A stretch of 64,000 nucleotides of DNA from contig MU008189.1 in assembly GCA_010909165.1 (NCBI GenBank), positions 124,001 through 188,000 on the forward strand, in the 5' to 3' direction. The translations under genes were made by a program, and so were the position numbers. The notes under the pieces are model-generated. The model saw nothing but the letters and a program-made list of their open reading frames with translations. It ran no database searches and was not told the DNA's origin. Positions 1,292-62,213 of this stretch are shown here, one piece after another. Every line of letters starts with the position of its first letter. Positions within the stretch are counted from its first letter, which is position 1. Source of the stretch: Anthoceros angustus. Taxonomy: Eukaryota > Plantae > Anthocerotophyta.

Positions 1292-1969
1292 ATGTCAAAG
1301 TCTGTTCCAACCTTCTCAACTTGGATCAAGATGGCCAAGGCTGTTATCTTATTTGCGATGTGGATGTTGGTGGGCTTGCAAGCAGCAATTGCACAAGAGA
1401 GTTCCTCCTGTTACGACGGCACTTCTCGGCTCAGGTTCACGAAATTTTGGATTGCTAGGGAAGGATTATCCGATGTGACGTATGACGGCAGACCCATTAA
1501 CCTCGTAGGCCCGAAAACTAAATTGATTATTGATGCTAACGGGTTAGCGATTGCGAGTGTGGACGTGAACACCTATGAAAAGTGTGTAGAGGAAGGCACA
1601 TGTATGTTGTCGAATGGGAAGCTCATTGCATACGATTCATATCGTGAATTCTTTTTCGTTGTGGATCAAACGAAGTATCCCTATGGAATTGGGTCCACCA
1701 ACAATCCGTTGCACCCTTTTGTGAGCGTAGCCATTGGCGACCTACCCTTCGGAACAAAGCTATCAATTCCAGCGTTGAAGAACGTGAAGCTCCCAAACGG
1801 AGAAGCACATAATGGGTGCGTCCAGGTAGAGGATAGTGGTGGGCACGGTCCTTGTTACATCGATTTCTTTGTGGTCTCGTACTCAAACTACGTGGCATTA
1901 GATTCGAACTTACCGGAATACACTACAGCTGAAATAGACCCGAATTGTGTGATTCTCAATTACGTTTAA
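1292..1969 (+). CDS. Intronless secreted protein with a 3D (MltA-like, double-psi beta-barrel) domain
   Basis: 225-aa ORF with a hydrophobic signal peptide (AVILFAMWMLVGLQAAIAQ). C-terminal PFVSVAIGDLPFGT...HNGCVQVEDSGG...IDFFV matches the 3D-domain pattern VAxD..P.GT...DxG...ID.F. The FTKFWIAREG and YEKCVEEGTC segments recall fungal and bacterial 3D proteins (from memory). Confidence 0.7.
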   Translation: MSKSVPTFSTWIKMAKAVILFAMWMLVGLQAAIAQESSSCYDGTSRLRFTKFWIAREGLSDVTYDGRPINLVGPKTKLIIDANGLAIASVDVNTYEKCVEEGTCMLSNGKLIAYDSYREFFFVVDQTKYPYGIGSTNNPLHPFVSVAIGDLPFGTKLSIPALKNVKLPNGEAHNGCVQVEDSGGHGPCYIDFFVVSYSNYVALDSNLPEYTTAEIDPNCVILNYV

Positions 1970-4532: not shown

Positions 4533-5012
4533 TGCGGGCGCGCGGTGTGCCGCAGTGGCATGGGAGCGGCGTCAGGCGCATGATCGGGACCGGAGCGGGC
4601 TCGGACACGGCGCTGGAGGTGGCGCGGCGGCGCAGGAGCGCGTCAGGCGCCGGAGTGGGTGCGAGTGGGCGCGGTGCGGTGCGGTACGGCCGGGGCGTGG
4701 TACGGCGGGCGGGCACGGCGGGCGTGGTTTGTGGTGTGCAACGAGCATGGCGTGCTAGGGGACGAGGTGCGAGGCGGGCGGGCGCGGTGTGCCGCAGTGG
4801 CATGGGAGCGGCGTCAGGCGCATGATCGGGACCGGAGCGGGCTGACACGGCGGCGCTGGAGGTGGCGTGCGCAGGAGCAGCCGGGGCGCCGGAGTGGGTG
4901 CGAGTGGGCGCGGTGCGGTGCGGTGCGGCCGGGGCGTGGTACGGAAGGGCGGGCACGGCAGTGCGTGGTTTGTGGTGTGCAACGAGCATGGCGTTAGGGG
5001 ACGAGGTGCGAG
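4533..5012. repeat. Very GC-rich tandem duplication, about 241-bp unit x2, inside a GC block spanning 4309-5280
   Basis: cgcggtgtgccgcagtggcatgggagcggcgtcaggcgcatgatcgggaccggagcgggct at 4541 and 4783; caacgagcatggcgt at 4739 and 4980. Confidence 0.9.
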
Positions 5013-5559
5013 GTGGGTCAAGCGCTTGGGGCGGGAGGCGGGCTCGGGGCAGTCCCGGCCGCTGGCCGGGTCATCCCCGGGACGGCGGGCTCGGCTTCTA
5101 CGAAGGTAGGATGTGCGGAGGTAGGGTGGGCAGGGTGGCCAGAGTCGGGCAGACGGTGCAGGGGCCCCGGTTGCCTACGACTCCAGAGGCGGGGCTCGGC
5201 TATGGGCTGCGGCCTTGCCGGGGTGCACGCCACTGGTGTGCCATCGGGGTTGCGTCCGGTGCGTGTTTTGCTGCGGTGGCGGTAGGAATTTATTTTTCCA
5301 TGATTTTATTGAGTTTCTTTTCGGTAGCTGGTGGATTTCCTACCCCTAGCTTTTGGTTGCGAGTTGCAGGTGCGGGTGCTAGTTTGGTGGGTCGGCAGTG
5401 GTTTTGTGGGTTGCAGTCCCTCTAGGCAATTCTCTTTGGCCGGCCTTTTGGGGTTCGCCATACGGAGCTCACACTCTGTATGTCTTGTAAAGGCTGGGGT
5501 CATTTTGTCCCCGGTCCGCGGTACCTCCTCGGCCCTATCACCCTCCGACTGGCGTTTGC

Positions 5560-30905: not shown

Positions 30906-33900
30906 ATGGCGAGCGCGCTGTCGTCGGCGGCGATGGCTGCCCGGCCTGCCGGCCCGGCTGTCACAGTCTGCTCCGCCTCGCCCCTGGGTACGTCTGTACT
31001 GCGGAATGCAGTGGATTGGAATGAATGCATTTTTGCACCACCCGCTCACCCTCCTCGTCTCGCTTGCTGTGCCAGTGTCGCAGCAGCAGGCGGGCTCCAG
31101 CAAGCCGGCGCTTCCCAAGCCTGTGCCTCCTTCCCCTTACGCTCCCGCGCCTGCTCCTCCCATTGCGGTTCCGCCTGCCCGCCCGGCTTTCCAGCAGCAG
31201 CAGCAGCCGCAGCAACAGCAACAGCAGCAGCAGCAGCCGCAGCCGCTGCAATATGGCAGGGATGTGGCTGCCGCAAAGCAGGCGATGGAGCAGGGCCGGG
31301 CCCCTCCCGTGACGCGCCTGGTGCTGAACAAGGCGGCCAAGGACCCGCCCCCGACGTCTCTCCGGCTGGCGGGGAGGATTCGCACGTCTGAGGCGGATGC
31401 TGCGTCTGTACAGTCGCTGGACCAGATTCTGGACCATGTTGAGAAGGGGTTCCAGTCCGAGCTCCTCAGCCGACAGCAGCAAGCTGGTACTGTTTTGATG
31501 TGTATGTTAGGGTTTCGCATTGCAGGTGCTGGTGCTGGTGCTGTTGGTGCTGGTAGGATTGGATTGTGTTGTGTTCGGTGGAATTTTCCTTATTGTGGTT
31601 GCTGAATTGAGTTGCCTGCCCGGCCCAGGCTTCTGCTGCAGAGCCGTGAATCGTCTCTGCTTCGTTGTGGACCTGATTGAGCCTGGAGCTCGGTTGTGGA
31701 CATTGCAGGCCCTTCTTCCAGTTCAGGTACCTCGGCAGGAGCTCCAGCAGGGACCTCGTCAGCAGCTCCAGGAGGGAGCTATTCAGTGTCTCCAGCAGGG
31801 ACGTATTCAGGGTCTCCAGCAGGGTCCTCCTATTCAGGTCCTCCAGCAGGGTCCTCCTATTCAGGGCCTCCAGCAGGGTCTTCGTATTCAGGGCCTCCAG
31901 CAGGGACATCTTCGGGAGCTCCAGCAGGGTCTTCGTATTCAGGGCCTCCAGCAGGGACATCTTCAGGAGCTCCAGCCGGTCGGGACTTCAGGGCCTCCTC
32001 AGGAGCTCCACCTGGGCGAGACTTCAGAAATAGGCCGTCTGCTGCCCCTGGAGCTCCTTGGAGGGTAAGGGTGGACGAGCCCAGAGTGAACCGGGAACCG
32101 ACATTGGGGGCAGCGCCGCCTACGGTGGGGCCAGTGCCACCCCCGGTGGCTGATCTGAATCTGAATGGTATTCAAACTGACCAAGGTTTCAGGCCAGAGC
32201 CTAGGAGGACAGCTATAGTGAAGCCGGTGCTGCCCCGAAGGCCTGCACCGGAGGGGCCTTATGCACCACCACCGAGACCCGGTGGTGTTCTGCAAAGGCC
32301 CGCTCCCCCTCCTAGGCCGGCCAAGCCTGGTGGGCCTATTTTGAGAGATATAGGTGCTGCACCGCAGCCACCAGCCAGACCTCCTCCTAGTGGTGCTTCC
32401 AGTGGCCCCATTTTGAGAGATGTTGGTGCTGCTCCAAGGCCTAAAGCCGTGGACCCAGTGCTAGCAACGGCTGCTGTGGCCGTACCACCCAAGTTCACCA
32501 AAGCAGCTCCTGCCAAAGGCAAAGAGGACTGGCGGAAGAAAGCCAGTGCCAATGCGGCAGTTGACGGTGCTAACAAGCGGAAAACAGCTGCAGTGCGAGA
32601 TAAGAATACAGATGTTGGGACTGGTGACATCGACATTCCTGGGGTTGGCCTTGGTCGCGGTAGGAAGTTCACCAAGGCTACCCGCAAGGCTGCCCGGAAT
32701 GAAGCTGCTAGGGCAGCTGCACCTGTGAAGGTAGACATTCTTGAAGTAGGGAAACAGGGGCTATCGGTTGCAGAGCTGGCCTCAAAACTGGCTGTCAATG
32801 AAGGGGAGGTGGTGAAGGCTCTATTTTTGAAGGGCATCCCAATCACTGTGAACCAGATTCTTGACGAGGATACTGTAAAACTTGTTTGTAACGAGTTTGA
32901 CGTTGAGGTTATAGAAGCAGGTGTTGTGGAAATCAAGGATTTGGCTAAGAAAAATGTCGAGTTTGTGAATGAAGACGACTTGGACTCTCTCCAAGTTAGA
33001 CCACCAGTTGTCACGATCATGGGCCATGTGGATCACGGCAAGGTAAATGCTTTGTGGGAGTACTAGGGCTGAAGTTTGGATTGTTCGTTTTGTTTTTCAA
33101 TATCCACTACAGCAGTTTCCGCAAGATGAGGGGATTCTTTGCTGATCAAGATGCCTTGTCTGTTGTATCTATCTGCAGACATCCTTGCTGGACTACATCA
33201 GGAGAGCGAAAGTATGTGCTCAGTTCAGTCGTATCAGGAGTATTTTTTTCGTTATATAAGACTCCCCTGAGATGCGCATTTCTGACCCAATGGTTCACTT
33301 TCAGGTCGCTGCTTCTGAAGCAGGCGGTATTACTCAAGGTATAGGAGCGTATCGGGTGCCTGTTGAATATGGAGGTGGAGAGCAGTCATGTGTGTTCATT
33401 GACACCCCAGGGCATGAGGTGCAGCATTCTCGGGCCTTTTCGAGCTCTTAGCGCATCCGCTAGACACATTGGACTCATTGGGTGAATGACCTGTGACAGG
33501 CTTTCAGTGCAATGCGAGCTAGGGGCGCTCGAGTCACAGATATTGCAATTATTGTAGTTGCTGCAGACGATGGCGTGCGACCTCAAACGTTGGAAGCAAT
33601 TGCACATGCCAAAGCTGCAAAAGTGCCGATGGTGTTTGCATTGAACAAGGTTTCTTGACTGACCCATGTCCTGAAGTACATGCTCCTATATCTCTTGGGC
33701 TTGCCATGTCCTCACGTTGTTGAGCTCTATGCTGTCCGGATCAGCAAGTCTCTAAGCTTCTTAGGAAGTGACTGGAAGGTGAGTTGCTGAAGGTTGCCTG
33801 TTTGAACCTGCAGTGCGACAAGGATGGGGCAAATCCTGAGCGTGTTAAGCAGGAGCTCGCTAATAAAGGTATCCTTCCCGAGGAGTGGGGGGGTGATACT

Positions 33901-46870: not shown

Positions 46871-47845
46871 ATGGCGGGAAGCAGCGTGGCAGCTGAGTTG
46901 CCGCCGGGTGCTGTGCAGGCGTCGTGGAATCAGAGCGGCGAGAGGTTGGCTGTGGCATTTGACAGCGGCAGGATTCAGGTTTGGGATCAAGAGCAGGGTG
47001 GATTAGTGTGCAGCGGAGAGTGGCAGGCCCATGAAGCCAGCATTGTGAAGGTGGTGTGGGCTCCTCCCACTTGCGGGAACGTGGTAGCCTCCTGCTGCAC
47101 AGCCGGCAGCATCCGTGTGTGGGAGGAAACCAGCGAGGGGGACGATGGGGACGCCTGGACGCCATGCGCTTGCGTGCAGGAGGGATTTGCGGCGGTTCTG
47201 GACCTGCAGTTCGGGAATTGCCTGTCGGGGCTCAAGCTGGTTGCAGCCGGAGGGGACGGCCATGTCAAGGTGTACGAGACCACGGATGCGCTGTGCCTGA
47301 AGCAGTGGGAGCTGCAGGCGGATTTTCCCAACGTGCGCAGCGCCACGGAGGGGCTGGATAAGCTCAACTGCTCCGCGGCGTCCATTTCCTGGCGGCCTTC
47401 TTCTGGCCTGGCCCAGCAGCCTGTGTTTGTGGTCGGGTATGAGACTGACAACCTCGCCTACTGTGCGGCCAAGGTGTGGGAGTTCCTGGAGGTGCAGCAG
47501 CGGTGGCATCCCATCGCCGAGCTGGTGGAAGCAGACGAAGCCCCGGAAGCCGTTACCTGTGTGTCATGGGCCCCCAACATGGGCCGGCCTTACGACCTTG
47601 TGGCCGTGGCCAGCAGGTCTACCGTGGCCATCTGGCAGCTCTCCTTCCCGCAACAGCATGGTGGCAGGCCGTCAGTTCAGAGAGTGGCTCAGCTGTGTGA
47701 ACACGATGGCGAGGTCTGGGAGGCGGCCTGGGACATGGCTGGCATGACTCTTGCTACGTCTGGAGCGGATGGCCGTGTTAAGCTCTGGCAGTGCGGCTTT
47801 GATGGCTCTTGGCAGGCCAAGGGTATTGTTCAGGGCAGCCCGTAG
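46871..47845 (+). CDS. SEH1: WD40 nucleoporin SEH1, single exon
   Basis: WNQSGERLA, WQAHEASIVKVVWAPP, LKLVAAGGDGHVKVYE, VSWAPNMGRPYDLVAVA, HDGEVW..AWDMAGMTLATSGADGRVKLW. Confidence 0.88.
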   Translation: MAGSSVAAELPPGAVQASWNQSGERLAVAFDSGRIQVWDQEQGGLVCSGEWQAHEASIVKVVWAPPTCGNVVASCCTAGSIRVWEETSEGDDGDAWTPCACVQEGFAAVLDLQFGNCLSGLKLVAAGGDGHVKVYETTDALCLKQWELQADFPNVRSATEGLDKLNCSAASISWRPSSGLAQQPVFVVGYETDNLAYCAAKVWEFLEVQQRWHPIAELVEADEAPEAVTCVSWAPNMGRPYDLVAVASRSTVAIWQLSFPQQHGGRPSVQRVAQLCEHDGEVWEAAWDMAGMTLATSGADGRVKLWQCGFDGSWQAKGIVQGSP

Positions 47846-48562: not shown

Positions 48563-51500
48563 ATGCAATGTGATGCCGCGGGCACCACTGCAGGAAACGT
48601 CGGCTCCCTCTCAGCCATGGCTGTGTGGAGTCCTACAATTGAGCCGCACACCAGGCAACAAGACCCGTTGTGGGCGCATTTTCGGAGGACCCAGCAAATT
48701 GGCTTCTTCACGGGTATTTTAGCAAGCGCTCCCGCTTCTGATCGCCTGACCTCATGGAAGCGAGCTTGGGCAAACAAAGGATCTGTAAGATGCAAAAGCT
48801 TTGCAGGAAGGGTAGCTGGAGCTGGAGACGGAGACGGATTTTCCAGTCAGGGACTCCTGTGGCGACAATTCAAGGGTGAATCCCAGGGGATGTTGCCGGA
48901 TGCTGCTGAAGCTGGCAGGCCTGCAGGCCACGAAATGGAAAGGGTTGTCACGGCTGACACCGTGAACAGTCTTTGTCATCAAGGCCATCTGGCTGAGGCT
49001 GTTGAGGCTCTGGGAGTTTTGGTGCAGGCAGAATGTGGTGTTGCCAGATCTCTCTTTTACACGGTCCTGAAGAAATGTGTGTTGAAGAAGGATCTTGTTT
49101 GGGGTCGCCGCGTACATGCTTTCATGGTGAAAGGAGTGTATGACTCGGACACGTTCCTGTGCAACCACATCCTGCGGATGTATGCTTCTCACGGCAGGTT
49201 GCAGGACGCGATGGATGTGTTCACCGTGGTTGCCGAACCTGATGCTTTCATGTGGTCATCCATAATTTCTGCGCATGTTAAGCACGGGCAAGATAAGCAG
49301 GCCGTGCAACTGTATCATCGCATGCGCAGGTCGAGTGTGAAGCCAGATGGGCATGTGTTTGTGGCAGCCCTTCAGGCTTGTGCCAAGGCAGGGGATTTGA
49401 AAGCTGCCCAGGAGCTGCATGCTGATGTGTTGGCCAGTGGGGTTGCGCCTGATTTGTTTGTGTGGAATTGCTTGGTGGACATGTATGCCAAGTGTGGGAG
49501 CTTGGAAGATGCTCGGAGAGTGTTTGACGGACTGGTAGAGAAGGACGTGGTGACCTGGACTTCTCTGGTTGCAGGGTATGCTCAGCAGGGCATGGGGCAG
49601 GAAGCCATTTGTCTCTACAGGGCTATGCGAGAAGAGGGCATCGCTGTACCCGATTCTGTGACTTTTGTGTGCCTCCTGCAGGCATGTGCAAGTGTGGGTG
49701 CCTCAGCTTTGGACACGGGGAAGCAGCTTCATACACAAATTAGAGAACGAGGATATGAAGCTGATGTGTTTGTAGCCAACAGTTTGGTGAACATGTATGC
49801 AAAGTGTGGCAGCTTGGAAGAGGCTCAAACAGTGTTTGAGGGACTTGCTCATAAAGACGTGGTGACATGGACTGCCATGATAGCAGGGTTTTCTCGGCAG
49901 GGCATGGGCCAGGAAGCACTTCTTCTTTCCGGTGCTATGGAAGGTGAAGGCATTGCTGTGTCCAATCCCATGACGTTTGTGTGCCTGCTGCAGGCATGTG
50001 CAAGTGTGGGAATCCCAGCGTTGGAGAAGGGGAAGCAGCTACATGCACAAATTAGACAACAAGGACAGCAAGCTGATGTGTATGTAGCCAACAGTTTAGT
50101 TAACATGTATGCCAAGTGTGGCAGCTTAGAAGACGCTCAAAGAGTGTTTGACGGACTTGGTCACAAGGATGTGGTAACGTGGACTGCACTAATTGCGGGA
50201 TACTCCCAGCAGGACATGGGCCACCAAGCCCTTCACCTTTACAGTACTATGCAAGAGGAAGGGATGGTTGCACCAGACTGTGTGACATTTGTGTGCCTCC
50301 TTCAGGCATGTGCCAGCGTGGGCACCCCAGCTTTGGAGAAGGGAAAGGAGCTTCATGCAGAAATCAAAGAGAGAGGACATCAAGCAGATGTCTTCGTAGC
50401 CAACAGCTTGGTCAACATGTATACAAAGTGCGGCAGCCTAGAGGATGCTCGGAGAGTGTTTAACGCACTTGCTCAGAAAGATGTGGTGACCTGGAATGCC
50501 ATGATGGCAGGGTATTCCCAGCAGGACAGGGGCCAGGAAGCTCTTCAAGTCTACAGGGCCATGCAAGAAGAAGGCACTGCTCTACCTGATTCCGTGACAT
50601 TTGTGTGCCTCCTGCAGGCATGTGCAAGTGTGGGCACCCCAGCCTTAGAGATGGGAAAGCGACTTCACACACAAATTAGAGACCAAGGATACCAATCTGA
50701 TGTGTTGGTAGCCAACAGTTTGGTGAACATGTATGCAAAGTGTGGCAGCTTGGACGATGCTCAAACACTGTTTGACGGACTTGTTCAAAAAGATGTGGTG
50801 ACATGGACTGCCATGATAGCAGGGTTCTCCCAGCAAGGCATGGATGAGGAAGCCCTTCATCTCTACAGGGCTATGGAAGCTGAAGGCATTGCTGTACCCA
50901 ATGCCGTGACATTTGCGTGCCTCCTGCAGGCATGTGCAAATGTGGCAGCTTTGCATCTGGGAAGAGAGCTACATGCACAGATCGTAGAACAAGGGCTTCA
51001 GGCTGATATATTTGTAGCCGGGAGTCTGATAAACATGTACGGGAAGTCTGGGAGCATGATTGATGCACGTCAAGTGTTTGAAGCCTTGCCTGAAAGGGAT
51101 GTTGTGGCCTGGAATGCGTTGATTGCAGGATACAGCCACCAAGGAGACAGTGCAGAGGTGTTTGAAATGGTGATCAGAATGCGGGAGGATGGTATACAGC
51201 CAGATGGGATTACGTTCCTTGGTGTATTAACGGTCTGCAGTCATACAGGTCTGGTGAGCAAGGGGCAAGAGTTCTTTGAGGCTATGAGCAGACACTATGG
51301 CATCAGCCCCACAGTGCAGCACTATGCGTGCATGGTGGATCTCCTGGGCCGGGCAGGCCAACTGGACGAGGCCGTGACTTTGGTAAGCACAATGCCTGCA
51401 CTGCCTGATGCTGCCATAGTATGGCATACTCTGCTGGGTGCTTGTCAAAACTGGAGCAATGTGGAGGTCGGACGGTTTGCTTTTGACCAAGCACTGAAGC

Positions 51501-51754
51501 TGCAAGAGAAGGATGCTGCAGCACATGTGTTGATGTCCAATATTTACACGGGCGCTGAGATGTGGGAGGAGGCACAGGAGTTGCAGGCAAAGAGAATAAG
51601 CATCGGGGCATGGAAGCAGCCGGGTCAGAGCTGGTGGACAGACACGGACGGCATGGTGCATAGGTTTCTGGTTGGGGACAAGAAGCTTCCCCGTATTCAA
51701 GCACGGCCGAAACAGGTTGGGGCACTGGTTAGGGAAGAAATCAGACTCACTTAA
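48563..51754 (+). CDS. PLS-class PPR protein with E1/E2 and a truncated DYW:WW-type domain
   Basis: Intact 1063-aa ORF with P-L-S triplets (five near-identical, about 104 aa each). It ends WKQPGQSWWTDTDGMVHRFLVGD...stop, with no HxE/CxxC deaminase core. Confidence 0.93.
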   Translation: MQCDAAGTTAGNVGSLSAMAVWSPTIEPHTRQQDPLWAHFRRTQQIGFFTGILASAPASDRLTSWKRAWANKGSVRCKSFAGRVAGAGDGDGFSSQGLLWRQFKGESQGMLPDAAEAGRPAGHEMERVVTADTVNSLCHQGHLAEAVEALGVLVQAECGVARSLFYTVLKKCVLKKDLVWGRRVHAFMVKGVYDSDTFLCNHILRMYASHGRLQDAMDVFTVVAEPDAFMWSSIISAHVKHGQDKQAVQLYHRMRRSSVKPDGHVFVAALQACAKAGDLKAAQELHADVLASGVAPDLFVWNCLVDMYAKCGSLEDARRVFDGLVEKDVVTWTSLVAGYAQQGMGQEAICLYRAMREEGIAVPDSVTFVCLLQACASVGASALDTGKQLHTQIRERGYEADVFVANSLVNMYAKCGSLEEAQTVFEGLAHKDVVTWTAMIAGFSRQGMGQEALLLSGAMEGEGIAVSNPMTFVCLLQACASVGIPALEKGKQLHAQIRQQGQQADVYVANSLVNMYAKCGSLEDAQRVFDGLGHKDVVTWTALIAGYSQQDMGHQALHLYSTMQEEGMVAPDCVTFVCLLQACASVGTPALEKGKELHAEIKERGHQADVFVANSLVNMYTKCGSLEDARRVFNALAQKDVVTWNAMMAGYSQQDRGQEALQVYRAMQEEGTALPDSVTFVCLLQACASVGTPALEMGKRLHTQIRDQGYQSDVLVANSLVNMYAKCGSLDDAQTLFDGLVQKDVVTWTAMIAGFSQQGMDEEALHLYRAMEAEGIAVPNAVTFACLLQACANVAALHLGRELHAQIVEQGLQADIFVAGSLINMYGKSGSMIDARQVFEALPERDVVAWNALIAGYSHQGDSAEVFEMVIRMREDGIQPDGITFLGVLTVCSHTGLVSKGQEFFEAMSRHYGISPTVQHYACMVDLLGRAGQLDEAVTLVSTMPALPDAAIVWHTLLGACQNWSNVEVGRFAFDQALKLQEKDAAAHVLMSNIYTGAEMWEEAQELQAKRISIGAWKQPGQSWWTDTDGMVHRFLVGDKKLPRIQARPKQVGALVREEIRLT

Positions 51755-52407
51755 CGACTCAAGATGACGAACTGCAGGCTCCTGAAGGAGCCTGCATACA
51801 TACTAGTAGACAGCATGAGCAAGAGACAAAAAAACAAAGCGAAGGCCAAGAAGATGCGCTGCTTTGGGAAAAGGCCTGTATATTCAGCGAATGAGACATT
51901 TCTTTTAGGTCCACGAACTCGCAAGGGTAGTCCTTCTAAAAAATGACAACGTGGAACGCCAAGGGAACGGGAACGACAGCACGGAGTGCTTCCTGGTTGA
52001 GTGCAGCAGGGTTGGATAAGGGGATAAAAAAACTAAGCGCCCTCAAAGCTTGTCCAAGTGCCTGGCACCTGGAGGTAAAACTCGACGAAACCACGTTCAA
52101 TCATCACAGCTTGACGGCAAGGTTACTAGGAAAGGACCAGAGATAATGACCCTTGTTCGAGATGTTTCATCTCCAAGAACGTTAAAAAGAAGAGATGGAA
52201 ACGGAGACTTTATTAAAAAGAAGAGATGGAAAAACTCATTTACCCGGAACCGAGGGGACAATATAGCAAAGGGTCGAAGCGTCAGGGGGGCTAGTCCCTC
52301 GAATGCCAACCCCGAAGCTACTTATTGCCTCGATTATGCTATGGTTCGAGATGAGGAAAGGCCTGTTTACTTCTAGTGTATATGATGCCACGTCTCTTGC
52401 ACTCGTT

Positions 52408-52590
52408 GCGTCCTATAAATAGCGTTGACCATCGCCCTGCAAATGCGTCCTGTATTAGTGATGGCCATCGCCCTGCAAATGCGTCCTGTAAATAGTGTTG
52501 GCCATCGCCCTCTGTAGGGCGATGGATGTCGGAGTTGTAAATAGTGTTGGCCATCGCCCTCTGCAGGGCGATGGATATCCACTCCGACGA
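52408..52590. repeat. Four-unit tandem repeat containing two perfect hairpins
   Basis: ccatcgccct occurs four times; two copies form ccatcgccct-ctg(t/c)-agggcgatgg stems. Confidence 0.85.
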
Positions 52591-52899
52591 TTGTGATAGG
52601 CTTTAGTACAATGCTTATTGAGCCAGGAAAAATCATTGTCGAGGAGAGACACGAGGCTTTAACCTCCCTAGAGTGCGATTTGATAGCTGCTATTCTTTTT
52701 TTCGTTGCATTGTGTGTAGGATAGGAGATAGGGTTAGACAACAAGGCCTCGTGGGGGGGGCCAGATTACCCCTCCGGCGTAACCCCAATGTCCTGGTCCG
52801 GAGGAAGTCCAGAGAAAAGCGCGGAAGCAAACCGGGCAAGACTTGAGAGACCGGCGGAAGGACCAACAAGCAGGGTGTCATTTTGACCGAGTACTATCT

Positions 52900-53365
52900 C
52901 AGTCCCGGGACCACCTAGCCTAGCTACGCTCAGTCCCGGACCGAAGAGGGACCGTGCCTTTTTGCGACCCTTGGTCACTAAATATAATAAATATTAAATA
53001 AATAATTTATAAATAATAATATTAAAAACTGCAGACTGCAGCCCAGCCGGCAGAATGCAAACTGCATCCATGATAAGATGGGTCCATGTGTCCATAATAA
53101 ATATAAATCTTTGGATATAAAATTAAGTAATTTACCGAACCTTTTATGAACCCTCGGTCCCCAAGGGTAATAGGGGACCGAGGGTGGGGACCGGACTCCT
53201 GAAGAACTCCGGTCCCATGTTTTTTTTAACACGTGCCGGTGCCGGGACCGGGACCGAGCTTGGGACCCCGTCCCAAGCTGCCGTCCCGGCTTATAACGGC
53301 TCCTGGTCTGCCTGACATGCAGACGGTCGGAGGACGGGAACCTGCCAGGAGCCGTTATAAGCCGT
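52900..53365. mobile_element. Hairpin-rich, GGGACC-motif-rich block, probably a non-autonomous DNA-transposon remnant
   Basis: Perfect inverted repeats at 53151-53162/53173-53184 (12 bp) and 53287-53306/53345-53364 (20 bp). Many gggacc/ggtccc motifs surround an AT-only core. Confidence 0.4.
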
Positions 53366-53734
53366 TTGTTTGTGGTGGCTGCACAAGTTTCATTTGGGGT
53401 GGCGGACCCAGGGACGGGCATCGGAGTAAAGGGAAGCGTGCGAGCATGAGAAGTAGTACGAGATGCGGACAGGCGACAGTTGCAAGGCGCGAAAGGACAC
53501 CACTTTGCTACCTTGGCTCCCACCCTCTCGAAAAGGGACCGAAAACCTTTTGCCGAAGGCCTTGTCGCTCTCTGTGAACCAAATGCAAGTGGACGTGCTA
53601 GGTAGCGATGATTTGCGGATCAAGCATGACCGTGGAGTTATGGAAGCGTGAACCCAAACCCCAACTCCACCGTATTATCCCTTCCTAAACATTTACCGTG
53701 GCGTACACACTTGAGCAAGGATAGGGCATTTTTC

Positions 53735-56700
53735 TCACGGTCGACCCTTACAACTGCAACAACCAGCTGCGAATCGATGCACACGGTACCCATCCCTCAC
53801 AACAATGTCTCTCTGCTCAAGCCTTGACATGATCTCCGTGGAACTGTGGCAGTCACTGCACATGCGTAGATTCTTCGTCACCACCAGCGGGGTCCCACTA
53901 GGAGCGTTCACGAGACCAAATGCCAGAGCTAGCTTCTCAGCATGCCCACAAAGCGCATCTTCCTTTTCCTTCTCACACAGTGGCTTCAACACCAACTTTG
54001 TGTCAGGCACGTGGCCTCCTTCCTGCTTCAGACGTGCATTCGTGCTCTCTACCTTAAGCACGATATCCTCTCTCCTTTCTCCCACCAGGAATCTATGTAC
54101 CTGCTCATTCACCTCAATGGTCGCCACTGCAGGTTTCTTGTTAGCTCCGGCTACCATTCTCTGTGTTTCTATCCTGTCTACATCGGTCCACCGACCTGCA
54201 TCTGCGTAGGCATTGGCCATGAGCACATAGGCAGACGCCCCTTGGGGGTCCAGCCTCACAATTCTTTCAAAACACCACACAGCCCTCTCTATATCCCCGT
54301 GACTCTTGCAAGCATTCAACAAAGACGTCAAGCCCACAACATTACTTTGCCACTCACATGATAACAGCATGTTCTCTGCCTCATTTAAATGGCCTGCACG
54401 CCCAAGAAGATCAATCATGCAATTGTAATGCTCCATAGTAGGTTTGACGCCGTGCTTTTCAGCCATGGAATCAAAGTGCTTGCGACCCTCGTCGACCAGG
54501 CCCTCATGACTGCATGCTACGAGAAGGCAAGTAAAAGTAGCACCATTAGGCTGAATACCGGCAACTAACATCTCCTCAAAACAAGCGAGTGCTCTGTGAC
54601 CATCATCATTAGCACCATACCCAGATATCAGGGCATTCCATGTCACCACATCCTTTGTTCATGCTGTCAAAAACCTGGCGTGCATCTTCCAGTTCACCAC
54701 ATTTTGCATACATGTCCACCAGGCAGTTGCCCAACACTACGTTATCCAGCAGTCCTCTTTCAACAATCTGTGAGTGCAGCTGCCTGCCCTTCTGTAAGGC
54801 ACCAGTGCTTGCACAGGCCTTCAGAAGGCAAGCAAAAGTAACATGGTCAGCCAAAATCAGGCCTCCTGCTCCATTTGTCCATACACAAGCGCCTCTGGCC
54901 GAGTCCTTGCTGTGCATACCCAGCAATCAGGGCATTCCATGTCACCACATCCTTTGTTCCATGCTGTCAAAAACCTGGCGTGCATCTTCCAGTTCACCAC
55001 ATTTTGCATACATGTCCACCAGGCAGTTGCCCACAACGTCATCCAGCAGTCCTCTTTGACAATCTGTGAGTGCAGCTGCCTGCCCTGTAAGGCACCAGTG
55101 CTTGCACAGGCCTTCAGAAGGCAAGCAAAAGTAACATGGTCAGCCAAAATGAGGCCCTCCTCCATTTGTCCATACACACAAGCGCCTCTTGGCGAGTCCT
55201 TGCTGCATACCCAGCAATCAGGGCATTCCATGTCACCACATCCTTTGTGGCCAAGCTGTCAAAAACCTGGCGTGCATCTTCCAGTTCACCACATTTTGCA
55301 TACATGTCCACCAGGCAGTTGCCCACCACTACGTCATCCAGTCCTCATGACTGCATGCTACTAGAAGGCAAGTAAAAGTAGCATCATCAGGCTGAATACC
55401 GGCAACTAACATCTCCTCAAAACAAGCTAGTGCCTTGTGACCATCATCAAGCACCATACCCAGATATCAGGGCATTCCATGTCACCACATCCTTTGTGGC
55501 CATGCTGTCAAAAACCTGGCGTGCATCTTCCAGTTCACCACATTTTGCATACATGTCCACCAGGCAGTTGCCCAACACTACGTCATCCAGCAGTCCTCTT
55601 TCAACAATCAGAGTGCAGCTGCTGCCCTTCTGTAAGGCACCAGTGCTTGCACAGGCCTTCAGAAGGCAAGCAAAAGTAACATCAGCCAAAATCAGGCCCT
55701 CCTGCTCCATTTGTCCATACACAAGCGCCTCTTCCGAGTCCTTGCTGTGCATACCCAGCAATCAGGGCATTCCATGTCACCACATCCTTTGTGCATGCTG
55801 TCAAAAACCTGGCGTGCATCTTCCAGTTCACCACATTTTGCATACATGTCCACCAGGCAGTTGCCCACCACAACGTCATCCAGCAGTCCTCTTTCAACAA
55901 TCTGTGAGTGCAGCTGCCCTTCTGTAAGGCACCAGTGCTTGCACAGGCCTTCAGAAGGCAAGCAAAAGTAACATGGTCAGCCAAAATGAGGCCCTCCTCC
56001 ATTTGTCCATACAACAAGCGCCTCTTGGCCGAGTCCTTGCTGTGCATACCCAGCAATCAGGGCATTCCATGTCACCACATCCTTTGTGGCCAAGCTGTCA
56101 AAAACCTGGCGTGCATCTTCCAGTTCACCACATTTTGCATACATGTCCACCAGGCAGGTGCCCACCACCATCATCCAGCAGTCCTCTTTCAACAATCTGT
56201 GAGTGCAGCTGCCCTTCTGTAAGGCACCAGTGCTTGCACAGGCCTTCAGAAGGCAAGCAAAAGTAACATGGTCAGCCAAAATGAGGCCCGCCTCCATTTG
56301 TCCATACACAACAAGCGCCTCTTCCGAGTCCTTGCTGTGCATACCCAGCAATCAGGGCATTCCATGTCACCACATCCTTTGTTCATGCTGTCAAAAACCT
56401 GCGTGCATCTTCCAGTTCACCACATTTTGCATACATGTCCACCAGGCAGTTGCCAACAAACAAGTTATCCAGCAGTCCTCTTCAACACATCACAGTGCAC
56501 TTTTCTGCCAGATTCAAGTCAGCAATGCACAGGCCTTGAAGGCAGCTACAAAGACGTGAGCATCCGCCTTCACTCCTGACCTGCATCTCATGGTAGCGCC
56601 TCTTGGCCCATGTCCTTCCTTTTGCATACCCAGCAATCAGCACCGTCCATGTCACCACATCCTTTGTGCCATGCTGTCAAAAACCTGGCGTGCATCTTCC

Positions 56701-58201
56701 AGTTCACCACATTTTGCATACATGTCCACCAGGCAGTTGCCAACAAACAAGTTATCCAGCAGTCCTCTCACAATCACAGTGCACTCCTGCCCTTCTGTAA
56801 GGCTGCGCACAGGCCTGAAGGCAAGCAAAAGTACATCAGCCTCCTGCTCCATTTGTCCATACAAGCGCCTCATGCATCCTGCTGCATACCCAGCAATCAG
56901 GGCATGTCCATGTCACCACATCCTTTTCCATGCTGTCAAAAACCTGGCGTGCATCTTCCAGTTCACCACATTTTGCATACATGTCCACCAGGCAGTGCCC
57001 AACACATCATCCAGCAGTCCTCTTCGACAATCTGTGAGTGCAGCTGCCCTTCTGTAAGGCACCAGTGCTTGCACAGGCCTTCAGAAGGCAAGCAAAAGTA
57101 ACATGGTTAGCCAAAATCAGCCCTCCTGCTCCATTTGTCCATACAGAACAAGCCTCATGTCGAGCCCTTGCTGGCATACCCAGCTATCAGGGCATTCCAT
57201 GTCACCACATCCTTTGTGGCCATGCTGTCAAAAACCTGGCGTGCATCTCATTTTGCATACATGTCCACCAGGCAGTTGCCAACAAACAAGTTAGTAGGAA
57301 TGCCACTGTCCACCACGTCGCGGTGCACCCTTCTGCCAGATTCCAAGTCGGCGGCAAATGCACAAGCCTGAAGGGCAGCTACAAAAACGTGACCATTCGC
57401 CCTTATTCCTGACCTGCGCATCTCATGGTATAGTTGTATGGCCTCATAAGGTTTCCCATGTTTAGCATATGCAAAGATGATAGAACCCCACGTGATAACA
57501 TTTGGTTTGCCCATCCTGCTGAACACATCCATAGCCTCCTGCAGACTACCTCCACATGCATACATGCGCAAGATATGGTTCCCCAAATATGCGTTTGACT
57601 CGTACCCAAGTTTGACAGTGAGATCATGAACTCGTCGCCCCACAACCAAATCCTTCTGAGGTGTACACAGTTTCAGCACAGTGCAAACCAGAGACTGAGA
57701 AATAGCAGAGCCTGTTTGCGCCAGAGATTCCAGGGCTCCCACGGCCTCAGAAAGCTTCCCTTGCTGACATAACGTGCTCACAGTTACAGCCGTAGCGACG
57801 CCCATTCCTGAACCTGCACGCCTGCCAGGTTCAGGCTTATCCGGGGAGTTCGAGTCGGAAGGAGAGGCACTAATACCCATCTGCATATCCAAGGAAACGA
57901 CCTGCTCATCAACCCAAGCTGGCCTAAACATGCTGTTTAAGCACAGGACCCCGCCAGACCCCTTACGCCGGATGACAGGCGAACGGGAGCTCTTCTTCTC
58001 TCGTCTGTTGTGCCACCACAAGTGCTCCTGCTCCTGGCAACGACCAACTGGAGGAGCTGGGCTCCTTATACTGCTGCACCTGGAGGCTTTGCTTGCCAGG
58101 GGTTGACTCCCTAAGATCAGGTGAGCGGGAGCTCCTGGAATCCCTGTACATACACCAATTTGTTGGGTCCAGAACGGGTCCGGCTGCGATACTGTAGCCA
58201 T
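53735..58201 (-). CDS. PLS-PPR protein with DYW:KP domain ending GRP (candidate U-to-C editing factor); central array frameshifted in this assembly
   Basis: C-terminus: KKPAVATIE...HRFLVGE...CGHAEKLALAFGL...KNLRMCSDCH...GCCSCKGRP. Intact 5' ORF at 57248-58201. Ten copies of the S-motif lie between 54666 and 57250, with many indels. Confidence 0.85.
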
Positions 58202-58499
58202 CGTTCAGGACCGCTGTCGGAAGATGAGTCCAACAACAGACTGTGGGGGAATCCCCTCGTACTGTGTGTGACCACACCATTCGGGCATATAGGTAAATTG
58301 GAGGTGCATGGACGAGACAAGGCCTGTCAACACTCGAATCCTCCGCACCTGCCTGCTCTGGTTAGTAGATGTCGTTTAACGACGTTTAAAGAGACAGTCT
58401 GACGTACTCGGATTGCTTACCAGCCGGAAGTCAGGGAAGTGGGCGCTCCTTCTTCGCTGCATGTGCTCAGAGTTTCCTCTAAAACGTGCTGGCTCCTCA

Positions 58500-59330
58500 A
58501 GGGTCCCTGGCTCCCACCCTCTCGGAAAGGTTCTGAAAAGCATTTGCCAGAGGCCTTGTCGCTTCCTGTGAATCAAATGCAAGTGCGACGTACGCTAGGT
58601 AGCGATGATTTGCAGATCAAGCACGACCTGGAGTCGTGTAAGCGTGAATCCCATCTCCACTGCATTCTCCCTTCCCAAGCTTCAATCAGACTCTGAGGCA
58701 GGTAGACTTGTAAGTACAGCAGCAAGGACCGTGACGCTGGATCCTGCAACTCCATAACTAGACCGTGATTCCAATTTGGGATCTCATGGTCACAGTCGGG
58801 TGTAGACTTGAAGGGAGCATAGAATGAAATTTCATCCAAGTGGACTAAGATAGACTTCTTCTTCTGCTCTAGCCCCTTGCTCAGTAGGCCTGCATGTAAA
58901 CTATCCATCAAGGAATGTGATGTCAATGTAGCTGGATACTATCCTTTCTTATGCTGCGACGGAAGAGAAATGTTCTCCAGAGTCTCTATGCGGCTGACGG
59001 TCAAGATGTCACACTTTGCAGACATCCGCACCAAACAGGCAAGAGTGGATGTGGAGGCACAACTACCCATGCGGATTTGATATCCATATCTAAAGCAGCC
59101 AGCTGAGCATCCACCCGAGCCGGCTTGGAGAAGTGGTCCAGAGCCCGACGTTCTCTTTGTCGAGCTGGCCTCATTGCACCTGGCGGCTTGATGGCTTCCA
59201 ACTTTCCAATGAAGTCAGGCAAGTCTAAGCTCTTCCTAGAACCCCTGTCAAGGCACCATTTTGTTGGGTCCATGACGGATCCGGCTAAGCCCTTTGCCTG
59301 GCTCAAATGCAGCTCTCCATACAACGAAGT
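58500..59330 (-). pseudogene. Internally deleted tandem paralog of the GRP-type PPR gene (leader plus 3' flank only)
   Basis: PDPSWTQQ and FSKPARVDAQLAALDMDIKSA match PDPFWTQQ and MFRPAWVDEQVVSLDMQMGISA of the 58201 gene. 58505-58677 duplicates the 3'-flank block at 53511-53685. Confidence 0.65.
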
Positions 59331-59540
59331 CCGGCTCGCGCTCAGGCTGTGGATGCAAGAGGGGCAGAGAGCCAGTGGGGGTATCTCAACTGCCAAGATG
59401 TCTGTCCACCTGAGAGACGTGGCAAGGAAAATGAGCATGCTGTACGACAGCAATGGCAATGGCCCCTACCCCTAGGCCTCTAGCAGTTCCGACTTCACGC
59501 ATTCTTGTCATCCAGCAGCAGCACTGCTTGTTGTGCAGCC

Positions 59541-62213
59541 ATGCTCCTCGGGCCAGGTTCTTCGGTGGATGGAAGGCTTTGGGCTCTGCAGAAAGGTTAT
59601 TCGGTGGATGGAAGCCTTTGGGCTCTTTCTGGAGAGAGCAACAGGGGGAACAAGAAGGCACCCGGGCATCAGGACTTCAGGCACAATGCATCCATGGAGG
59701 GGCTGGGGCTGCGGGCCGACACCCAACTCGAGCACAAACGTGGTTGGGCGGATACCAGAAATATTGTTGCTGAAGGGTTGGAGAAACGCTGTTGTGAGGG
59801 AGAGCTCGGTGAGGCAGTGGAAGCCCTGGACCTCGTGCTGCAGCAGCGAGGACGTTATAGTCATACCAAAAGGAAGGAGATCTTGTATTGTGCCCTCAAA
59901 AAGTGCATGGCAAGTAAGGATCTGGCTCTGGGCAGGCGAGTTCATGCTGCTGCTCTGAGTAGTGGGTTTGAGTCGAATGCATTCTTGGCCACCCATTTCA
60001 TCACTATGTACGCTGCTCATGGGAAGTTGCAGGATGCAGTTCAAGTGTTTGCCAAAGTGGCTGAGCCAGATGCCCATCTCTGGGCCAGCATTATATTGGC
60101 ATATGCTCGGCATGGAGAGGCCGTGGAGGCCTTAAGTCTTTACCGACAGATGCGAGAGTCGTCGTCTGTGAAGCCGGATAGCCACATATTTGTGGCTGTC
60201 CTCAAGGCTTGTGCCAATGCAGGGGATGTGGCTGCAGGCAAAGAAGTCCATGCTGACGTTTTGGAGAGTCCGATGAAGGGCAATTTGTTTGTTGGGAACA
60301 GCCTGGTCAGCATGTATGCAAAGTGTGGGAGCTTAGAAGAGGCTCGCACAGTGTTTGACCATCTGCCAACAAGAGATGTGGTGACATGGACTGCCATGAT
60401 AGCAGGATACATGCAGCAAGGGCGTGGCCAAGATGCCTTGGCTCTGTATGAGAGCATGCAAGAGGAAGGTATGACTCCAGGCAATCGTGTCACATTTGTA
60501 TGCCTGCTTCAAGCGTGTGCTAGTGTGGGGGACCTGCATCAGGGAAGGCGCATTCATGTGCACATTCGCAAAAGAGGCTTTGAAGCTGATCCACAGGTTG
60601 GCAACTGCCTGGTGAGCATGTATGCAAAGTGTGGGAGCTTGAAGGATGCACTGAGTCTGTTCAACAAATTGCAGCCCGTGAGAGATGTGGTCACATGGAA
60701 TGCTATAATGGCAGGATATGCGCAGCAAGGGAGAGGCCGGGAAGCTCTGGTTCTGTACGCGAATATGCAGCAGGAGGGCCTCATTGCAGCGAATCATGGT
60801 ACATTTGTGTGCCTGCTTCAAGTATGTGCCAGTGTGAGAGATCTGGACCAGGGGAAGCAGCTTCATGAGCAGATCAAGCAACGAGGTTGGGAGAGTGATT
60901 TAGTCCTATGTAACTGCCTGGTGGACATGTATGCAAAATGTGGTAGCTTGGAGGACGCTCGTAGTGTGTTTGACAGGTTAGTTGTAAGGGATCTGGTAAC
61001 ATGGACAACTATGCTGTCAGGGTATGCTCACAACGAACGCGCAAAGGAAGCTCTTGCTCTTTATGCCAGTATGCAGTTGGAGGCCATAGCTCCACTGGAT
61101 TCTGTTACCCTCTCGTGCCTCGTACAAGCATGTGCTAGTGTTGGAGCTCTGCACCAGGGAAGGGAGCTTCATTCCCTTATTAAGAAACAAAGCCTGGAAG
61201 CCGATGTGTTTATTGGCAGCTCCTTGGTGGACATGTATGCAAAATGTGGGAGCCTGGAGGATGCTCGTCGAGTATTTGACAGGTTGCTAGTCAGAAGTCC
61301 TGTGTCATGGACCGCCATGATCAAAGGCTATGCTGAACATTGCGATGGTGAAATGGCAATACAGTGTTTCCACGACATGTGTGAGGAAGGTATTGAGCCA
61401 GATGAGACAACCTTCACCTGTCTTCTCGTGGCATGCAGTCATGCAGGCCTGGTGGATGAGGGCTTGAAGTACTACAAAGTAATGGTGGACAAGCACGGCA
61501 TTGTGCCCACCGACTATCACTACAGTTGCATGGTTGATCTTCTCGGGAGGTCAGGCTATCTGGATGAGGCAGAAGATTTCCTACGGAGAGTTCCGTTTGA
61601 GAAGGACTCGGTTGGTTGGACTTCTTTGCTCAGTGCGTGTAAAGGCTATGGTGATGTAGAACGTGGACGGCGATGTTTCAACCGCCTGGTGAGATTGGAA
61701 CCTCAAAATGCAACTGCATATGTTCTCTTGAGCACCATCTACGCCAATGCAGGCAGGTGGAAGGATGCAGATGAAATAGAAAGCTTGAGACGGACTGCAG
61801 GTGCTTGGAAGAAGCCTGCAAAGGCATGTATAGAAGTCGAGAAGAAAGTGCATGAATTCACTGTAGGTGATGAAAGATCTGACATATCATCAAAGGTGAA
61901 GAGTGTGAGCATGAGGTTAAAGGAGGAAGGAGGGCATGTGCCACGAACAGAGTTAGTGCTGAAAACAGTGCCTGAGCAGCAGAAGGAAGATGCCTTGTGT
62001 GGGCATGCAGAGAAACTGGCGTTGGCTTACGGGCTGCTCAACACCCCACATGGCACAACTTTGCTGGTCACCAAGAACCTGCGCATGTGCATTGACTGCC
62101 ATAGTAGCACCAAGATCTTATCACGGCTTGAGAAGCGAGAGATTGTAGTTAGGGATGTTCACCGAGTGCATCGTTTCCTAGATGGTTCTTGTTCATGCGG
62201 TGATCGGCATTGA
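59541..62213 (+). CDS. PLS-PPR protein with DYW:KP domain ending DRH (candidate U-to-C editing factor), intact single exon
   Basis: PLS triplets, P2-L2-S2, E1/E2, then KKPAKACIE...HEFTVGD...CGHAEKLALAYGL...KNLRMCIDCH...GSCSCGDRH. First ATG at 59541. Confidence 0.95.
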   Translation: MLLGPGSSVDGRLWALQKGYSVDGSLWALSGESNRGNKKAPGHQDFRHNASMEGLGLRADTQLEHKRGWADTRNIVAEGLEKRCCEGELGEAVEALDLVLQQRGRYSHTKRKEILYCALKKCMASKDLALGRRVHAAALSSGFESNAFLATHFITMYAAHGKLQDAVQVFAKVAEPDAHLWASIILAYARHGEAVEALSLYRQMRESSSVKPDSHIFVAVLKACANAGDVAAGKEVHADVLESPMKGNLFVGNSLVSMYAKCGSLEEARTVFDHLPTRDVVTWTAMIAGYMQQGRGQDALALYESMQEEGMTPGNRVTFVCLLQACASVGDLHQGRRIHVHIRKRGFEADPQVGNCLVSMYAKCGSLKDALSLFNKLQPVRDVVTWNAIMAGYAQQGRGREALVLYANMQQEGLIAANHGTFVCLLQVCASVRDLDQGKQLHEQIKQRGWESDLVLCNCLVDMYAKCGSLEDARSVFDRLVVRDLVTWTTMLSGYAHNERAKEALALYASMQLEAIAPLDSVTLSCLVQACASVGALHQGRELHSLIKKQSLEADVFIGSSLVDMYAKCGSLEDARRVFDRLLVRSPVSWTAMIKGYAEHCDGEMAIQCFHDMCEEGIEPDETTFTCLLVACSHAGLVDEGLKYYKVMVDKHGIVPTDYHYSCMVDLLGRSGYLDEAEDFLRRVPFEKDSVGWTSLLSACKGYGDVERGRRCFNRLVRLEPQNATAYVLLSTIYANAGRWKDADEIESLRRTAGAWKKPAKACIEVEKKVHEFTVGDERSDISSKVKSVSMRLKEEGGHVPRTELVLKTVPEQQKEDALCGHAEKLALAYGLLNTPHGTTLLVTKNLRMCIDCHSSTKILSRLEKREIVVRDVHRVHRFLDGSCSCGDRH

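Follow-up and report, generated by a model that had tools for sequence, protein, structure and literature searches.

Positions 48563-62213 of a 64,000-nucleotide stretch of contig MU008189.1 from Anthoceros angustus (‘the window’, whose numbering is used throughout) hold three genes for pentatricopeptide repeat (PPR) proteins of the PLS class, here termed A, B and C. The explanation that best fits the locus overall, and which is held to be reasonably probable, is that all three genes belong to known classes, that the damage visible in gene B is most likely assembly error, and that gene A arose through an old exchange of its N-terminal part (the ‘head’). The head and the tail of hornwort-like PLS proteins clearly have different histories, and their trees are not congruent; this conclusion is drawn from the mutual rejection of the two maximum-likelihood (ML) trees in approximately unbiased (AU) tests. 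The locus is laid out as follows:

Gene A, 48563..51754, plus strand: intact open reading frame (ORF) of 1063 residues, E+ type, with a PLS array, E1 and a WW-type E2, and without a DYW domain.
Gene B, 58201-53735, minus strand: two intact ORFs flanking a frameshifted central array; DYW:KP domain of the GRP type.
Gene C, 59541..62213, plus strand: intact PLS-E1-E2-DYW:KP protein of 890 residues with the terminus DRH.
B-C intergenic region, 58202..59540, no strand assigned: 1.3 kb, by the gene coordinates.

Three genes of known classes

The window is plant nuclear DNA, in which intron-containing genes are mixed in and the G+C content is about 50%. The interval at 48.5-62.3 kb contains exactly three PLS-class PPR genes and no additional PPR fragment, with gene B, in the minus orientation, lying tail-to-tail with A and head-to-head with C. 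All three are real PLS-class PPR genes. The Pfam models PPR, PPR_1, PPR_2 and PPR_3 match gene A with E values from 1e-111 to 1e-55 and gene C with values from 2e-80 to 4e-33, and Pfam PPR matches are significant for both ORFs of B. The Pfam E motif is matched in A, in C and in the 3' ORF of B, and the deaminase model DYW_deaminase (PF14432) is matched in C (E 1.8e-33) and in the 3' ORF of B (E 3.2e-32), with no match in A.

Each of the three genes falls in a class that has been described before. All of the motifs that an earlier note on this DNA had quoted from A, B and C are present where it had placed them, and its account of three genes with WW-truncated, KP-GRP and KP-DRH ends is borne out as far as the ends are concerned; its treatment of the gene beginning at 58201 as a single ORF, however, has to be given up in view of roughly 40 frameshifts (described below).

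Different trees for head and tail

Separate ML trees were built for a head block (residues 127-310 of A) and for a tail block (P2-L2-S2-E1-E2), with the same 26 rows in each. These rows were A, B (represented by its 5' ORF for the head and by its 3' ORF for the tail), C and 23 relatives, mostly taken from read-archive assemblies; other database hits were excluded as too distant.

In the tail tree, the WW proteins, A among them, form a clade with support of 100/100, within which A is sister to the relative P0030 (90/72). The KP proteins form a clade of their own (99/98), with C in its DRH/DRP group and with a GRP subclade (97/94) that includes B as the sister of P0014. In the head tree, A, B and three GRP proteins make up one group (88/90). 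A starred clade (95/88) brings together C, the other DRH/DRP proteins and all other WW proteins, and neither of these groups includes the KP proteins with other termini. Among the sampled hornwort-like proteins, on these two trees, GRP heads belong to one group and DRH/DRP and WW heads to another, and the tails divide cleanly by KP and WW.

AU tests on the head data rejected an arrangement of all KP proteins as one clade (p = 3e-6) and of all WW proteins as one clade (p = 4e-4). The tail ML tree was rejected by the head data (difference in log-likelihood, delta lnL, of 195; p = 7e-90), the head ML tree was rejected by the tail data (delta lnL 479; p = 2e-55), and a placement of A with the GRP proteins was rejected by the tail data as well (p = 5e-51). 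The earlier note had asked for separate phylogenies of the leader, the PLS array and the E/DYW regions, with congruent trees named as an outcome that would speak against it; the head and tail trees are discordant, as the two reciprocal p values show.

The shared head and its leader

The features of the 5' ends of A and B on which the comparison rests are these:

Leader segment of A (residues 31-79), 48653..48799, plus strand: QxDPxW..TQQIG..TGI..APA, aligning to the leader of B.
Motif DPLW in A, 48662-48673, plus strand.
Motif TQQIG in A, 48689-48703, plus strand.
Motif NHILRMY in A, 49163-49183, plus strand.
N block of A (residues 127-310), 48941..49492, plus strand: pre-repeat helices and first PLS triplet, with GRP-like affinity.
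5' ORF of B (317 residues), 57251..58201, minus strand: leader with DPFW/TQQIG, a remnant of LW..NR..AWVDEQ, and the first PLS triplet.
Motif DPFW in B, 58180-58169, minus strand.
Motif TQQIG in B, 58168-58154, minus strand.
Motif NHILRMY in B, 57580-57560, minus strand.

The similarity between the leaders of A and B is greater than expected by chance: they can be aligned locally with a score of 59, against 27.9 +/- 5.4 for 500 shuffles, one of which also reached 59. The match is visible at the protein level only. Homology of the leaders or promoters of A and B at the level of DNA was considered and rejected, and similarity detected by blastn begins at about residue 114 of A. Outside A and B, the motif QxDPxW..TQQIG..TGI..APA occurs in none of the six frames of the window, gene C included, and it is absent from the first 120 database homologues. 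A leader motif shared by most PLS genes, which the earlier note had named among the things that would overturn its proposal, is not what these 120 homologues and this window show.

The first repeats behave differently from the leader. In the first-triplet block, A and B are 56% identical over 199 residues (from residue 112 of A), B and C are 46% identical, and A and C are 49% identical; for the heads of A and B as such, identity is 57% at the protein level and 68% at the DNA level. In the 23 database relatives, whatever their C-terminus, identity to the head block of A is 42-61%, and in the closer hornwort-like relatives, with ends as diverse as GRP, DRH, DRP, WW followed by DYW, and WW without DYW, it is 44-61%. 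The shared first repeats are generic, and the leader motif alone is specific to A and B. Of the ‘shared leader and first repeats’ that had been pointed out earlier, the leader stands and the repeats do not.

All three genes also carry remnants, degenerate in each case, of an element of the form LW..WW.NR..DFRHK..AWVD (at 48854-48871 in A, 58021-57902 in B and 59640-59760 in C). Two GRP proteins, P0014 and P0118, have the element in full, and the WW protein P0030 has part of it. A word search with the head of C returned mostly long multi-repeat proteins of lycophytes, ferns and conifers, with one new close relative, P0158; in another, limited to residues 30-240 of A, none of 1690 candidates scored, a result that does not speak for a lack of relatives. 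The front end (leader, LW..DFRHK..AWVD remnant and first PLS triplet) may be regarded as a family-wide module with a history apart from that of the C-terminal block.

A proposed mosaic origin for gene A

The N block of A finds its best identities (55-61%) among proteins of the GRP type. Along a sliding window, best hits are of the GRP type as far as about residue 312; beyond that point, starting at residue 313, the best hit is throughout the WW protein P0030, which has no DYW domain. From this switch, together with the leader that A has in common with the GRP gene B, gene A can be read as a GRP-like head on a WW-type body, a mosaic origin that its sequence makes rather more credible than the contrary. 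Because B is GRP-like or KP-like in its head, its array units and its tail, A rather than B would be the recombinant.

Gene A would most likely owe this structure to non-allelic recombination or gene conversion long ago, in which a WW-type gene had about 0.9 kb of its 5' end replaced. The junction would lie near the end of the first triplet, at about residue 310, and since this falls after the first PLS triplet it is the front end, and not the editing domain, that would have been exchanged. The exchange would have to be old, because the heads are just 46-57% identical.

Several points weigh against this account of A. An AU test on the head data that placed A with the WW/DRH clade was not rejected (delta lnL 10, p = 0.088), the WW/DRH group of that test having been chosen after inspection of the tree. 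Diagnostic sites in the head of A number only eight, of which six are GRP-like and two WW-like, and after the head the corresponding counts are two to three. The head clade that unites A with the GRP proteins is unstarred at its support of 88/90. The relatives come from assemblies of other species, with paralogy uncontrolled, and the appearance of an exchange could also result from concerted evolution of the head or from constraint specific to a lineage.

It is in the light of these points that a history with no exchange, although unlikely, has to be weighed. Under such a history, A, B and C would be three old tandem duplicates, their shared head would reflect conservation within the family, the lean of A towards GRP proteins would be ancestral similarity or noise, and the leader motif of A and B would be left over from a common origin and lost in C. 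The head-block identity of 44-61% in all C-terminal classes agrees with this, as do the failure of the AU test to reject A among the WW/DRH heads, the mere eight diagnostic sites, and the remnants of one common element in all three leaders. However, the tail block nests A within the WW clade (100/100, with P0030 as sister at 90/72) and not at its base, the head block puts A outside the starred clade of every other WW head (95/88), the leader motif ties A to a GRP gene, and the block trees are discordant overall.

The earlier note had gone further, and had proposed that recent recombination joined WW, KP-GRP and KP-DRH editing modules to a shared N-terminal recognition part. It drew on the leader and first triplet shared by A and B and on the different types of C-terminal domain, and the discordance of the block trees can be added on the same side. 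Its proposal is nevertheless very improbable in that form. The affinity of A changes after the first triplet, which leaves nearly the whole PPR array together with the C-terminal domain that belongs to it; A and B have arrays of unrelated origin by amplification, with units of 312 bp and about 303 bp and with different best hits; heads that are 46-57% identical speak of nothing recent; and C is without the leader motif. What survives of the proposed module swapping is the discordance of head and tail histories, and what falls is the movement of an editing module onto a shared array, given a junction in A at about residue 310.

An old exchange of the head of A has its nearest described counterpart among the P-class PPR genes, where recombination and unequal crossing-over have been reported among clustered restorer-of-fertility-like (RFL) paralogues (PMC5075784). 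The two cases are alike in their clustered paralogues, in internal amplification (of 312-bp units in A and of ~303-bp units in B) and in mosaic ancestry. They differ in that the genes described here encode PLS-class editing factors, in that it is the 5' head that was apparently exchanged, and in that the event would be old. No description of a head exchange among hornwort PLS subfamilies was found in the literature searched, which did not extend to Gutmann et al. 2020 and Gerke et al. 2020.

A broader version of the idea can be offered only tentatively: the head may evolve as a module of its own, which U-to-C (DYW:KP) and C-to-U (WW/E+) lineages may have exchanged on more than one occasion through non-allelic recombination. 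If that were true, A would be a caught example, and the head would have a function of its own (in targeting, partner binding or 5' RNA contacts) that is independent of the direction of editing.

Gene A as an E+ protein

The remaining features of gene A are as follows:

Tandem PLS triplets, 49472..50945, plus strand: 312-bp period, 4.7 copies, 79% matches and 0% indels by Tandem Repeats Finder (TRF); WW-lineage.
E1/E2 motifs with PG/WW box, 51452..51751, plus strand: Pfam E_motif (PF20431) at residues 964-1024, E 8e-12.
PG/WW box PGQSWWTD, 51620-51643, plus strand.
Stop codon, 51752-51754, plus strand.

The name ‘PG/WW’ is said to come from Gutmann et al. 2020. The C-terminus of A lies 36 residues past the PGQSWWTD box, and no remnant of a DYW domain (HxE or CxDCH) is present downstream in any frame. 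From these two facts A is taken to be an E+ protein and not a freshly truncated DYW protein; a DYW protein recently cut by a stop codon or a frameshift was considered and rejected, the downstream frames being without DYW-like sequence. E1 and E2 are both present and a DYW domain is absent, as in other E+ proteins, and six of A's close relatives have their C-terminus in the same region. The ‘stub’ that the earlier note had seen here is, in other words, an ordinary E+ architecture.

The array of A has the pattern of an old internal amplification maintained by selection. In pairwise comparisons of its units, the ratio of nonsynonymous to synonymous divergence (dN/dS) is 0.15-0.43 with dS of 0.5-1.0, and the specificity pairs at P1 vary across the units (TD, TN, TD, ND, TN). 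Gene A is under purifying selection and is an ordinary E+ factor, not a broken enzyme. Gene A would presumably specify C-to-U sites, with a DYW deaminase supplied in trans.

The E+ subgroup of PLS-class PPR proteins is reported to be enriched in hornworts, whose genomes carry 1,583-2,308 PPR genes (PMC13386178). Gene A resembles that subgroup in its PLS triplets, its E1, its E2 with a PG-type box and its lack of a DYW domain. It differs in that its E2 is an SWW variant, and in that its head groups with KP proteins of the GRP type and not with other WW proteins.

The damaged array of gene B

Two further features define the central part of gene B:

Central array, 54650..57250, minus strand: 2.6 kb with 9-10 tandem PLS triplets of ~303 bp.
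838-bp tandem duplication, 56178-55343 and 55341-54502, minus strand: 95% identity between copies.

As assembled, gene B has no continuous frame from its PLS array to its GRP terminus: the 5' ORF stops at 57250, and the ORF that ends in GRP opens only at about 54658. TRF assigns the array periods of 293-295 with indels of 4-10%, and individual units measure 249-300 bp against an expected ~303 bp. A frameshift-aware alignment to the canonical unit requires about 40 frameshifts, of which about 36 are deletions of 1-2 bases. Once the frame is restored in this way, a single in-frame stop (at 57250) is encountered, and 760 of 846 matched codons are those of the canonical unit. Introns and uniform decay were both considered as sources of this pattern and rejected, as the frame changes inside units at about 40 places while the unique flanks are intact.

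The distribution of the damage is informative. The flanking ORFs of B contain no frameshift in 621 codons (1.87 kb); for this length, the rate seen in the array would predict about 29 events. Between B units in the restored frame dN/dS is about 0.36. The ratio of gap openings to mismatches is 0.46-0.88 in the array of B against about 0.02 in those of A and C, and the copies of the youngest duplication in B, that of 838 bp, differ by 17 substitutions and 15 indel events. A GC-rich tandem duplication elsewhere in the window (4534-5017, ~240 bp, 89.7% identity), with 11 mismatches to 7 gap openings, matches the array of B in its richness in indels. This suggests that indel errors of the consensus are a general property of young tandem repeats in the assembly. 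Because the flanks are undamaged, dN/dS is about 0.36, and the ratio of indels to substitutions is high in young repeats, consensus error is favoured over decay; a pseudogene with 40 indels should moreover have accumulated hundreds of neutral substitutions as well as several nonsense codons, and B has not. The indels of the B array are thus probably consensus errors confined to young tandem repeats, although their technical origin is itself deduced from this pattern, and the gene may well be intact in the plant.

The opposing view, that B is a true pseudogene, its array enlarged by unequal crossing-over and now eroded by slippage deletions, would leave C as the only live KP enzyme of the locus. 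It is doubtful, but not without arguments of its own. The assembly does contain the ~40 frameshifts and the stop at 57250; some of the deletions are found at the same position in several units, and not even the consensus of the units is in frame; a hybrid unit arises from the 838-bp duplication, a length that three does not divide; and the specificity pairs are alike in all units. Against it stand the 1.87 kb of unique flanking ORF without damage in place of the ~29 events expected, the absence of nonsense substitutions in about 850 codons, the dN/dS of ~0.36, and an indel-to-substitution ratio 30-50 times as high as in the arrays of A and C, a feature seen again in the unrelated young repeat at 4534-5017.

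Consensus error as the preferred explanation also has to accommodate two difficulties. Since the frame-aware alignment rewards amino-acid matches, the dN obtained for B is biased downward. In addition, the uniform specificity pairs and the hybrid unit (u7, a P2/S1 hybrid formed where the 838-bp duplication puts a P2-type motif fragment in the middle of the array) are odd for a working editing factor. The pairs are identical in all array units (N,D at P1 and N,D at S1), which points to a very recent amplification of units, and the central array would on this evidence be the recent amplification of one PLS triplet. An intact B would read a monotonous, U-rich and periodic target, which is unusual for a site-specific editing factor.

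Gene C and the DYW:KP class

The C-terminal features of genes C and B are listed together:

DYW:KP domain of C, 61812..62210, plus strand: 133 residues, with KP box, HAE, K88 in TKNLRMC, CxDCH and the terminus DRH.
Box KKPAKACIE in C, 61809-61835, plus strand.
HAEKLA in C, 62004-62021, plus strand.
Terminus GDRH of C, 62199-62210, plus strand.
3' ORF of B (304 residues), 53735..54649, minus strand: P2-L2-S2-E1-E2 and a DYW:KP domain (54136-53738) with the terminus GRP; E_motif match.
Box KKPAVATIE in B, 54139-54113, minus strand.
HAEKLA in B, 53944-53927, minus strand.
Terminus KGRP of B, 53749-53738, minus strand.

The frame of C is open from 59505 (TTG), and its first ATG is at 59541. A search upstream of C found no leader-like exon, and the B-C intergenic region (58202..59540) contains no leader-like coding in any frame.

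DYW:KP domains have been described as carrying a KP box, HAE instead of HSE and a terminal triplet other than DYW, without xHP (PMC9478123, PMC11845758). They measure 132-133 residues and contain a conserved active-site lysine, Lys88, that is needed for U-to-C editing (PMC11845758). Both C and the 3' ORF of B show these marks: KKPAxAxIE replaces the PG box, HAE and CxDCH are present (which also supplies the HxE...CxxCH zinc site of the DYW family), and the domain is 133 residues long in each, from the K of KP to the end. In both, the lysine of TKNLRMC is residue 88 of the domain when numbering starts at the K of the KP dipeptide, an origin assumed to match the published one. Gene C is a complete DYW:KP protein of the DRH type and, judging by its family, a candidate U-to-C editor.

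Hornwort DYW:KP proteins comprise two subgroups, DRH and GRP, in the summary that PMC9478123 gives with reference to Gerke et al. 2020, and by this mark the present genome is hornwort-like. Among designer proteins based on them, KP1 is DRH-based and KP2 and KP3 are GRP-based; the GRP-based KP2 and KP3 edited U-to-C at 22-26% in E. coli, and the three active designs did not include KP1 (PMC9478123). Genes C and B resemble these subgroups in their PLS array, P2-L2-S2-E1-E2 region, KP box, HAE, CxDCH, Lys88 and termini, and within the KP clade they belong to different subclades, C to DRH/DRP and B to GRP. In contrast to the designer proteins, they are natural genes; their nearest database proteins are just 62-65% identical over the C-terminal block; and the array of B is unreadable as assembled. 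The adjacency of a GRP and a DRH gene at this locus, noticed earlier, is correct. Both subgroups were, however, already known, and the GRP copy cannot be read in its present form.

Other features of the window

A 36-bp tandem repeat (2.9 copies, 86% matches) is located in the A-B intergenic region at 52407-52511. Directly upstream of A, a 324-residue ORF at 46871-47845 on the plus strand looks WD-repeat-like, as judged by eye only. Farther away, a 456-residue ORF at 31696-33066 (plus strand) has an N-terminal part of low complexity, rich in Pro, Ser and Gly, and ends in the apparent start of a GTPase domain; again by eye only, it is possibly the first exon of an IF2-like gene. An intronless ORF of 225 residues with an N-terminal hydrophobic segment is found at 1292-1969 (plus strand).

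Implications

For work on RNA editing, gene C is a clean natural DYW:KP gene of the DRH type, and gene B needs re-sequencing before synthesis. More generally, frameshifted young tandem repeats in this assembly do not warrant a pseudogene call without a check of the reads. The locus does not offer one RNA-recognition array joined to opposite enzymes.

The possible old exchange of the head of A is of moderate interest to specialists. The discordant trees of head and tail suggest that trees of DYW-domain subfamilies do not describe the whole protein, and in hornworts trees based on the DYW domain could mislead the assignment of both orthology and targets.

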